NCBI RefSeq assembly: GCF_963853765.1
Contig: NC_088855.1
Location: forward strand, 31,124,001 to 31,188,000
Origin: Magallana gigas
Taxonomy: Eukaryota
Length of the DNA stretch: 64,000 nt
Reading direction: 5' to 3'
Shown: positions 7,489 to 10,288 of the stretch, piece by piece
Numbering within the stretch: the first letter of the stretch is position 1
Layout: every line of letters begins with the position of its first letter
The notes under the pieces: model-generated
Told to the model about the DNA's origin: nothing
The model's database searches: none
What the model saw: only the letters and a program-made list of their open reading frames with translations
Position numbers and translations under genes: made by a program

Positions 7489-10288
7489 CTACAAGGAAAC
7501 AGTTTTCCTGCTTCTTCCAACCCACTTGGAGAATTTTGTTAGAAAATTGGGTTTCTTTGATAATTTCTTTTCTGACCCTGTCGTCTGCTTCGGCGATTCA
7601 TTAGTCGTTTGGTCGGAAGACACAGCATCTAACATCCAATGGATACGCCTGGAATATTGAAAAATACTGAATGGCCATTGATGCTAATAAGTAAAATTGA
7701 GGATGCAACATTTCATTAAAGACTAGATTTACATTGTGGTTTCTAACAATGAAATAATAAATGTAATTCTTACTCGTCTTTCGTTGATTTTGTCATGTCT
7801 TCTCGTAAATTAAAATTAAAATCCGCTCGCTGCCTATCCCTTAATCGATACCTGAAATGTATGATTACTCCATACAGTAGATCTATTGTTTAGCAAAATA
7901 AAAATATTATAATAAAGCGAATTTTTTTTTTGGAATATCCTACAAACCAGTCATCAGACATTTTGAAATTTTGTTTCTCATACACATCACATGCTGGACC
8001 ATCAGTCAACTTGCTGTATGCGAACTTTTTGTCCCCCTCTAGTGACCTGTCCAATATAATTTGGAATTTTGTAAAATTTTACATCAATATGAAAATCCTT
8101 TGCTTATCTTTGGGTTTTGGATAGGGTCGTTTGCAAATATATATTTGCAAATTTGCTACTACCCCCTACCCACACATTAAGCTCGATAATGAGCGTACCC
8201 GTTGAGAGGTGGTTTGAACATCGATTGTTTGTCTATCGTTGTTTTTGTTTTCGTTGCCTTTTTCCTGAAATTTGAAAGCATTGAATTATAGATGCAGATT
8301 GGGGAAAAAAACATTTGCAAGTAAGTATCAACTCAATGTGAAGAGTTTCATTTTATCTTTAACTATACCTTGAGTAGTCGTCAATATTGGGATCATCTCC
8401 AATTAAAGACTTTGGTAAAATAATTTGTTTCTTGATGATGGCATTTTGTGTCCTGTGTATATAATTTCTATAATTATGAACTGGACATATTACATTTTGC
8501 ATCTAACTGTATATGCACGCCGTTCTTTTTTAGATAAAAATATTCCAAAAAATTGTATCTTAAAATGTCTAACTCAGTGGCCTCACTGGTCTGCCTTTTT
8601 GACAAATCTTCGGAGTCTACATTTTGTTTTGAATTCCTGTAAAGAAATTTTTTTTTTTAGATTTGTGTGTATTATGATTCATAACTATATATTAACTAAC
8701 TATACTACAACTATATATGATTCGTTCAAAAAACATCCTTACTTAAAAATTGGAGCCAAAAACATCTCGGCGATTTTTTTCATTCTTGGATCATCTGACC
8801 TCGGGGCTCTACATATAAAGTTGAATAGAGATGATAAATTAATAAGTAAGGGGAGAAAAAATATACAAACGTTTGAACATTTCTACATGTATGTAATGTA
8901 TAAATATTTGTTATATCTATTGTATGGTAACATTTTCAGAATTTTTTTTTACTTGAACGCAGGAACCAAAATAGTTCTTATTTTCTTTTTCGTTCTGGGT
9001 TTGGGTACACTGGCCCGGTGGTTCCTATAATGTAAAATGTGCGTAAATCGCCATTTTCAGTTTCTTTGTTTCTTCAATGAAATTAAATTTTAACACATTT
9101 CAGAGACATAAATAACATAAATGTTCTTTATGTCTCTGCACATTCAAAGAAAAGCAGAATTTGGTGAAATACGAATAAGCAGTATTGTATAGCATGGTCG
9201 ATGGTACTTACCATTTCTTTTCTGCACTTCGCATTTCATAACGTGTGGCGGTGGTGGTTTCATCAAGATTGCCTTGGCTAAATGAATTAAGGTGTTATAG
9301 ATAAAACATTGGCAAACAATTTTATTTTTTATAGTACCAATCTGAATTATTTTTTAAATAAAAAATATGATAATACGGTCAGAAGATACTATAATGTCAA
9401 AGCTCCCCTCCCTGAATTAATTCAATTTATTCGATAATGAAACATAAACCAACCGTTCCCTTTGATCTCACTCTTTTCAGTAAGTATGAAAAGTTATTTT
9501 TATATTCAGATAAGAAAGAATATTCTTTGCATAATTTTTGAGAAACCATGCAACATTACCCCTCTCCGTTTTAGGAAAAAAAGATTTTGAGAAGTTTAAC
9601 GTCATACATTATTCCTTCACTGCTTGTCAAGAGATGTACGTATTATACTCTGTCCCAAGTGTCCGCTTCCACCACTTGACACTTTTTGCGTAATATGAGA
9701 AATAATGAATCATTCTTTGGGTATTATGAGGTGATCTAATACGTACGGGCAGGGGTGATCGGATCAAATATAGCCCGAAGGGCTTTATGATGGATTTGAT
9801 CACGCCTGATTTCATCACAATACATGTAGGCCCCCTATTTACATGTGGTCTACGTGATCAAATCTCCAGAGAAGCTATTTGGGCTTCACTGACAGGATTT
9901 GATTTCGTGACCAACCAAGTTCATATAGCTTACATAAGTTGCAAAGAGTGCATTGAGTTAAACTTAAACCCTTGCCCTTTCATCATGCATGGAAGCATCA
10001 TAATGCGTATCTCTTTGGCTCTTTTGCTATATTAATTATAATGAGAATTGAACTTGTATAATCTATTTTTTATAGCGTTACAGTTTAAAACAAACCTCTT
10101 TTCGTGAAAACACAAGTTATCTGCATATTTAGTATCACCAATCGAGTTCACCACACCATTTCTGATATGAAATATTCGTTGATGCATGTATTCTACTTGA
10201 TTGCAAAACCTACTATTTCATCTTTTATGCAAATGTGACGTGAAACATACAATATTACGTCATATAATCCGTTTTTTTCTTGTTTCAT
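7489..10288 (-). CDS. Uncharacterised Lys-rich protein (~340 aa) encoded by about 12 short exons with all introns in phase 2
   Basis: Exons on minus strand: 10197-10288 (tentative; alternative donor gives 10251-10288), 9934-10026, 9640-9735, 9212-9277, 8953-9024, 8743-8808, 8574-8636, 8369-8452, 8199-8264, 7948-8046, 7774-7851, 7489-7648 (TAG). All are GT-AG, all internal exons are multiples of 3, and they join into one open frame: ...KRAKEIRIMMLPCMMKGQGF...AEKKWNHRASVPKPRTKKKIRTILVPAFKAPRSDDPRMKKIAEMFLAPIFK...DDWYRLRDRQRADFNFNLREDM...KPNFLTKFSKWVGRSRKTVSL*. No family recognised; the 5' end is least certain. Confidence 0.72.

Follow-up and report, generated by a model that had tools for sequence, protein, structure and literature searches.

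An oyster gene with phase-2 introns throughout and in-frame exon skipping on record: LOC105322354 of Magallana gigas

Textbooks give a single intron phase across a gene as the condition under which exons can be shuffled and skipped in frame. Precedents use phase 1, as in tropoelastin and the shuffled extracellular domains, or phase 0, as in collagen and the SCPP genes; an architecture of class 2-2 is possible and, to our knowledge, essentially unused. In tropoelastin (ELN), one phase is found at every exon border and exons are multiples of three, so that cassette-wise removal keeps the frame (PMC12554196). In the micro-exon genes (MEGs) of schistosomes, most of the coding region consists of short symmetric exons of 6-36 bp, almost all of the products carry a signal peptide, and exon skipping has been proposed as a source of protein variants (PMC5825161). 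Phase 2 is the rarest intron phase, with a share of 22-27% in tabulated genomes (PMC1574350). According to Patthy, class 2-2 modules suit shuffling as well as class 1-1 modules do, while the shuffled domain types are all 1-1; modules of class 2-2 were discussed as possible, and none was found among shuffled domains (PMC8001218).

The gene studied here is LOC105322354, listed in RefSeq as 'uncharacterized protein' of Magallana (Crassostrea) gigas. It is located on the minus strand of the window, the whole stretch of 64,000 nucleotides that was analyzed (contig NC_088855.1, positions 31,124,001 to 31,188,000), and coordinates given below are positions in this window. A preceding reading of the letters alone (the sequence-only reading) had remarked that a list of open reading frames held almost none of the gene. 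This did not make the gene unannotated, as four isoforms (X1 to X4) are present in RefSeq. Translation of these isoforms over exons 1-9 was 100% identical to the window, and the RefSeq and UniProt entries matched exons 1-9 of the window exactly. Using the 52-aa last exon as phmmer query, a 248-aa database protein was retrieved, which led to the remaining entries for LOC105322354. The gene is therefore already annotated and still uncharacterised; in a literature search, neither LOC105322354 nor the SRA runs containing its transcripts were mentioned. Searches for paralogues in the 564-Mb genome of M. gigas, made with DNA, two exon peptides, and the full profile, recovered nothing beyond LOC105322354, the matches of the full profile being the ten exons alone. 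LOC105322354 is single copy in this genome.

As RNA evidence, contigs or reads from four runs were placed on positions 7200-10700. The revised model comprises 10 exons; its frame opens with the ATG at position 10187, closes with the stop codon at 7491-7489 and is 281 aa long. Every one of the nine coding introns is in phase 2, which bears out the uniform phase claimed in the sequence-only reading, and the eight internal exons, 63-99 nt in size, are all multiples of three of phase 2-2. Exon 1 (10096..10253, 158 nt) contains the 5'UTR (10253-10188) with two tiny uORFs, followed by the ATG at 10187, 30 codons and 2 bases; its donor at 10096 (AG/gtttgt) is in phase 2. Intron 1 (10095-9278) measures 818 nt, introns 2-9 measure 96-187 nt. 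Exon 2 (9212..9277, 66 nt) is delimited by junctions 10096/9277 and 9212/9024 in transcript contigs L015-L019, the latter junction also being present in run X1. The next exons were all supported by RNA contigs: exon 3 (8953..9024, 72 nt), with an NLS-like KKK run and a PR.KK...L.P.FK motif; exon 4 (8743..8808, 66 nt), probably an old duplicate of exon 3; exon 5 (8574..8636, 63 nt), with the weakest donor (GA/gttaga) and skipped in contigs of a related oyster; exon 6 (8369..8452, 84 nt); exon 7 (8199..8264, 66 nt), missing from all three related-oyster contigs; exon 8 (7948..8046, 99 nt), skipped in RefSeq isoform X2; exon 9 (7774..7851, 78 nt); and the coding part of exon 10 (7489..7648), consisting of 52 codons and the stop TAG, with a 3'UTR extending to ~7196.

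An 808-nt contig from X2, an RNA-seq run, covered blocks from 9025 to 7374 in exon 10 and contained junctions 8953/8808, 8743/8636, 8574/8452, 8369/8264, 8199/8046, 7948/7851, and 7774/7648, with introns reading CT..AC on the plus strand throughout. Junction 9212/9024 was supplied by run X1, and the eight junctions from 9212/9024 to 7774/7648 were exactly those predicted from the letters. Three full-length M. gigas transcript contigs from separate runs (L015, L016, and L017) aligned in ten blocks each, starting at 10239, 10227, and 10197, respectively, ending exon 1 at 10096, joining 10096 to 9277 and carrying on through exon 10. The junctions are thus backed by RNA contigs from at least four independent runs, and LOC105322354 is a transcribed, protein-coding gene of 10 exons with nine phase-2 introns. 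In the predicted RefSeq models X1-X4, a donor within exon 10 (7577) is used, giving exon 10a (7648-7577, 72 nt, phase 2), and an alternative terminal coding exon follows at 3026..3146 on the minus strand. The tail of stored protein P0011 maps to the latter after a ttttag acceptor; the sequence of exon 3146-3026 is unique in the M. gigas genome.

The sequence-only reading had joined twelve exons into an ORF of ~340 aa. This chain is present in the sequence, with AG/GT at all borders. A script collecting AG...GT-bounded open segments of the listed sizes recovered all ten internal exons of 63-99 nt, and once a first exon at 10288-10197 and the last exon at 7648-7489 are added, the chain forms one open frame of 344 aa. 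Transcripts use part of the chain only. Eight of the ten internal exons and the last exon were confirmed base for base by RNA, whereas the 93-nt (10026-9934) and 96-nt (9735-9640) candidates (together 9640..10026, minus strand) are intronic and no junction leads to either. Both these candidates and candidate exon 1 were found in none of the transcripts examined; their positions are upstream of the transcript start or within intron 1, where a dispersed repeat covers them in part. As the same script yielded 33 candidate 'exons' in 3 kb, such an open chain is by itself weak evidence. In a contig of run X1, the letters beyond 10253 are what we take to be the reverse complement of a common template-switching oligo. 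Its attachment marks position 10253 as a 5' end of cDNA and the approximate start of the transcript; the ATG at 10288 is 35 bases further upstream. Furthermore, in the related oyster (nucleotide identity of its contigs 88-94%, dS ~0.2), the ORF starting from 10288 is interrupted by a stop, while the start codon of the revised model and the N-terminus (MHQRIF) are kept behind an in-frame stop. The 96-nt candidate overlaps a palindromic dispersed repeat in intron 1 (9692..9806), for which at least 1000 first-look candidates were obtained in the genome, on both strands. RNA depth at 9657-9890, accompanied in every run by loose ends and by joints to the opposite strand, is explained by this repeat. 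A 12-exon gene encoding 344 aa from ATG 10288 is refuted for the samples examined and we consider it extremely improbable; the proposed ORF was wrong at its 5' end, the transcripts giving 281 aa from ATG 10187. For annotation, the lesson is that a plausible open GT-AG chain may be wrong at one end.

With one phase at every junction and exons that are multiples of three, the frame survives the loss of any single exon or of several consecutive ones. Among 45 possible joins, 44 leave the frame open. The exception is the joining of exon 2 to exon 4, a 66-nt exon ending in TG and an exon starting with A, which creates the stop TGA, as had been foreseen from the sequence. At least six in-frame skipping patterns are recorded in databases and transcript contigs, in agreement with the splicing potential put forward at the outset. 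Exon 8 is lacking in RefSeq isoform X2, exons 2-3 in isoform X3 and exons 6-7 in isoform X4, all predicted models, and exons 3-5 are lacking in the UniProt model A0A8W8K255. A contig of run X1 joins 10096 to 8636, without exons 2-4. Two contigs of the related oyster, each from a different run, are without exons 5 and 7, and a third contig is without exon 7 and retains intron 5.

No homologues outside Magallana were detected when 5.8 billion proteins were searched three times through a word index, the matches being entries of M. gigas and transcript contigs of oysters only. Similarly, with the last exon as query, an exhaustive phmmer comparison to 1.84 billion representatives gave no relative beyond Magallana entries. 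A 1229-aa repeat protein (P0002, E 8.5e-5) was rejected as a homologue, being a low-complexity match. As far as databases reach, the gene appears to be restricted to Magallana, which agrees with the lineage restriction proposed from the letters. Between alleles of M. gigas, amino-acid polymorphism was high and dN/dS ranged from 0.5 to 1.4; compared with the related oyster, dN/dS was 0.32-0.49. In the latter comparison, replacement changes amounted to 34.5 over 501 sites and silent changes to 24.5 over 126 sites (Fisher p = 9e-5). The ORF is intact in all alleles and in the related oyster at dS ~0.2 (dN/dS 0.32). Purifying selection on the frame indicates that the gene is coding, and this selection is weak. 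'Fast-evolving', the term applied in the sequence-only reading, seems fair in view of these ratios.

Exons 3 and 4 share PR.KK, five variable residues and L.P.FK, and in both exons the motif ends at the exon border. When the pair was shuffled 20000 times, 6 shuffles attained its local score of 37 (p ~3e-4); over all exon pairs, 24 of 2000 whole-protein shuffles did so (0.012 experiment-wide). The similarity between these adjacent exons, which had been called duplicates, is therefore real and modest. No other exon pair of LOC105322354 stands out and no relevant tandem repeats were found at the DNA level. One old duplication giving rise to exons 3 and 4 is likely, judging from the residues shared; the broader claim of a gene built by exon duplication went too far, since statistics back this pair only and no trace is left at the DNA level.

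The 281-aa protein is rich in Lys, Ser, Asp, and Thr; with 13.5% K, 6.8% R and a pI of 9.8, the description as Lys/Arg-rich holds. Basic runs are present in exon 3 (KKK) and at the junction of exons 6 and 7 (RKK). By hydropathy heuristics, the first 40 residues contain no hydrophobic stretch (maximal 9-residue hydropathy 0.96) and the 281 residues contain no segment resembling a membrane span. For homology queries, the near-identical stored proteins P0015, P0011, and P0003 were used as stand-ins for the protein of the window. No match was obtained in Pfam (each exon and full-length proxies), NCBIfam or PDB (sequence and profile), and the protein was thus assigned to no known family by these searches. 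A sub-threshold match of exon 8 to FR47 (E 0.045) was taken as chance. The ESM Atlas provided no usable look-alike. AlphaFold2, run on a 7-row alignment, returned a mean pLDDT of 36 and four short helices only. The protein is apparently largely disordered, an alignment this shallow being weak evidence for such a prediction.

On the opposite strand, the first two exons of an EMG1/NEP1 methyltransferase gene are located at 10433..10747 (plus strand; Pfam EMG1, E=8e-8 on exon 2), and the intron at 10553-10645 was confirmed in four runs. EMG1 and LOC105322354 are arranged head-to-head, with transcript starts ~160-180 bp apart. CRE-like TGACGT motifs were read from the sequence at 10235-10242 and 10255-10262. 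In run X1, depth was 2,000-24,000 on the exons of LOC105322354 vs 50-100 on the adjacent EMG1, Logan contig depth being a poor measure of expression; in run X21, LOC105322354 was undetected and EMG1 was seen. These runs show in part that expression of LOC105322354 differs greatly between samples.

The closest known architecture is that of tropoelastin. As in tropoelastin, the phase is uniform (nine of nine introns, plus the optional tenth with its donor at 7577) and in-frame cassette skipping is seen in recorded transcripts. In contrast, phases are 1:1 in tropoelastin and 2:2 in LOC105322354, whose product is basic, is without a signal-peptide-like segment and is known from Magallana only; sequence similarity and a shared style of composition are absent. 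With the schistosome MEGs, LOC105322354 has in common short symmetric exons (eight of eight multiples of three, phase 2-2), fast evolution, exon skipping as a proposed source of variants and, as far as databases reach, lineage restriction. It differs in exon size, in lacking a hydrophobic N-terminus, in being single copy and in showing no sequence similarity to them. The name 'micro-exon gene', given in the sequence-only reading, was dropped, as exons of 63-99 nt stand against 6-36 bp in schistosomes (PMC5825161) and, by the hydropathy heuristic, a signal peptide is missing; both features are defining ones. Like the class 2-2 modules of Patthy, for which duplication, insertion and skipping all preserve the frame (PMC8001218), the exons are flanked by phase 2 on both sides and can be skipped in frame; unlike modules, they are not folded domains, and no shuffling to other genes is seen, paralogous exons being absent elsewhere in the genome. 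An SCPP-type gene was rejected because the introns are in phase 2 rather than phase 0 and a signal-peptide-like segment is lacking. The architecture of LOC105322354 is a curiosity of a known kind, comparable to the all-phase-1 gene of tropoelastin.

Taken as a whole, the observations are best explained by a single-copy coding gene with phase-2 introns throughout, skipping that keeps the frame and exons serving as motif cassettes of a flexible protein, and we consider this explanation quite probable. Each exon would then be a cassette of 21-33 residues bearing short linear motifs, one example being the basic PR.KK...L.P.FK of exons 3 and 4, and the choice of cassettes would yield length variants of one flexible protein, probably nuclear or polymer-binding. 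A serious competitor, to which we give somewhat less than an even chance, is that uniform phase is a historical by-product, that skipped isoforms are splicing noise and that no form other than the full 281-aa one is of consequence. Exons that are short and have mediocre splice sites would be missed from time to time, and products differing by multiples of three would escape nonsense-mediated decay and so turn up in assemblies and Gnomon models. The skip join 10096 to 8636, the sole one measured beside its constitutive partner, had a depth of 14.6 vs 4681 for the normal 8636/8743 (~0.3%), and this rarity implies that much of the skipping may be noise. All three full-length M. gigas contigs contain all ten exons, donors are weak at the skipped exons 5 and 8 and also at exon 1, which is joined to distant acceptors in two skip forms, and the allelic dN/dS suggests loose constraint. 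Noise accounts less readily for the related oyster, in which two runs yielded the form without exons 5 and 7 as the assembled one and a third contig lacks exon 7. Moreover, eight of eight internal exons being multiples of three is unlikely without a cause (~1.5e-4 at one in three each). At the other end stands regulated combinatorial skipping: a young gene confined to Magallana would have originated next to the bidirectional promoter of EMG1 as a chain of phase 2-2 cassettes and would produce disordered basic variants; this proposal we regard as unlikely.

Assuming independent phases, the probability of the phase pattern is ~0.25^9 = 4e-6. A fairer, rough estimate, giving each of eight exons a chance of one in three to be a multiple of three and taking the first intron as phase 2, is (1/3)^8 x ~0.25 = 4e-5 per gene of such size, on the order of one gene per genome, so that the numbers alone leave room for a meaningless coincidence, with about one such gene expected per approximately ten thousand multi-exon genes. 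The finding of duplication in one exon pair only also fits chance. However, exons and introns are uniformly short as well (96-187 nt for introns 2-9), skipping is on record in two taxa, the internal repeat ends in register with the exon border, and the optional exon 10a is likewise a multiple of three in phase 2. The short exons and introns, the in-register repeat and the skipping in two taxa argue for a structural cause, and chance alone appears quite unlikely to us. That the transcript is a non-coding, divergent product of the EMG1 bidirectional promoter, with a fortuitous long ORF, would be consistent with the head-to-head arrangement and with the lack of homologues and of a confident fold. 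Still, in every allele, and also in a taxon at dS 0.2, a frame of 281 codons stays intact through nine splices, and replacement changes are significantly fewer than silent ones; we hold such a non-coding origin to be very unlikely.

If regulated combinatorial skipping were true, LOC105322354 would be an intracellular phase-2 counterpart of the variation seen in tropoelastin and schistosome MEGs, and a rare natural use of class 2-2 modules. It further exemplifies a multi-exon, apparently orphan gene beside the bidirectional promoter of a housekeeping gene. As an RNA-confirmed all-phase-2 gene with skipping in two oyster taxa, it offers a small natural test case, which could show whether selection favours such an architecture for the variety of isoforms it allows or simply tolerates it.

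The minus-strand orphan gene LOC105322354 and its plus-strand neighbour EMG1/NEP1, arranged head-to-head, share a bidirectional promoter (window 10230-10265 and 10411-10433). Two CRE-like TGACGT motifs, at 10235-10242 and 10255-10262, lie on either side of the minus-strand transcript start at 10253, while EMG1 transcripts start at about 10411-10421. In a related oyster, one transcript contig (L018) runs unbroken from 10416 into exon 1 of LOC105322354, which suggests that in that oyster the gene either starts further upstream or overlaps the EMG1 5′ end.

Repeats were found in the first two introns of LOC105322354. 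Intron 1 carries a dispersed palindromic repeat of about 113 bp (9692-9806), with at least 1000 first-look candidates across the genome; it was transcribed in all RNA runs examined, with joints to the opposite strand at 9735/9806. Intron 2 harbours a shorter palindromic repeat, 38 nt long (9101-9138), which occurs at dozens of genomic sites; in one run a 48-bp deletion variant was observed at this position, joining 9090 to 9139. Further downstream, exon 10a (7648-7577) and the distal terminal exon (3146-3026) are separated by a long optional intron, which contains a run of 136 N (3619-3754), representing a gap or a masked stretch.

In this assembly, the 3′UTR of LOC105322354 contains an element of about 700 bp (6498-7195) terminating in the inverted repeats GGCGGATCCAG ... 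CTGGATCCGCC, its ends being palindromic and G/C-rich. Two transcript contigs of M. gigas, L016 and L017, lack the element, 7196 being joined directly to 6497. Because its borders are non-GT-AG, the element resembles a polymorphic MITE-like insertion more than it does an intron.

Depth in RNA run X1 was determined over LOC105322354 (7200-10700). Exon depth dropped about tenfold from 5′ to 3′, from about 23,000 in exons 1-3 to about 2,000 in exon 10, and exceeded that of EMG1 more than 100-fold. The template-switch oligo attached at 10253 in an X1 contig suggests a 5′-biased cDNA library, prepared from a sample in which LOC105322354 is among the most abundant transcripts.
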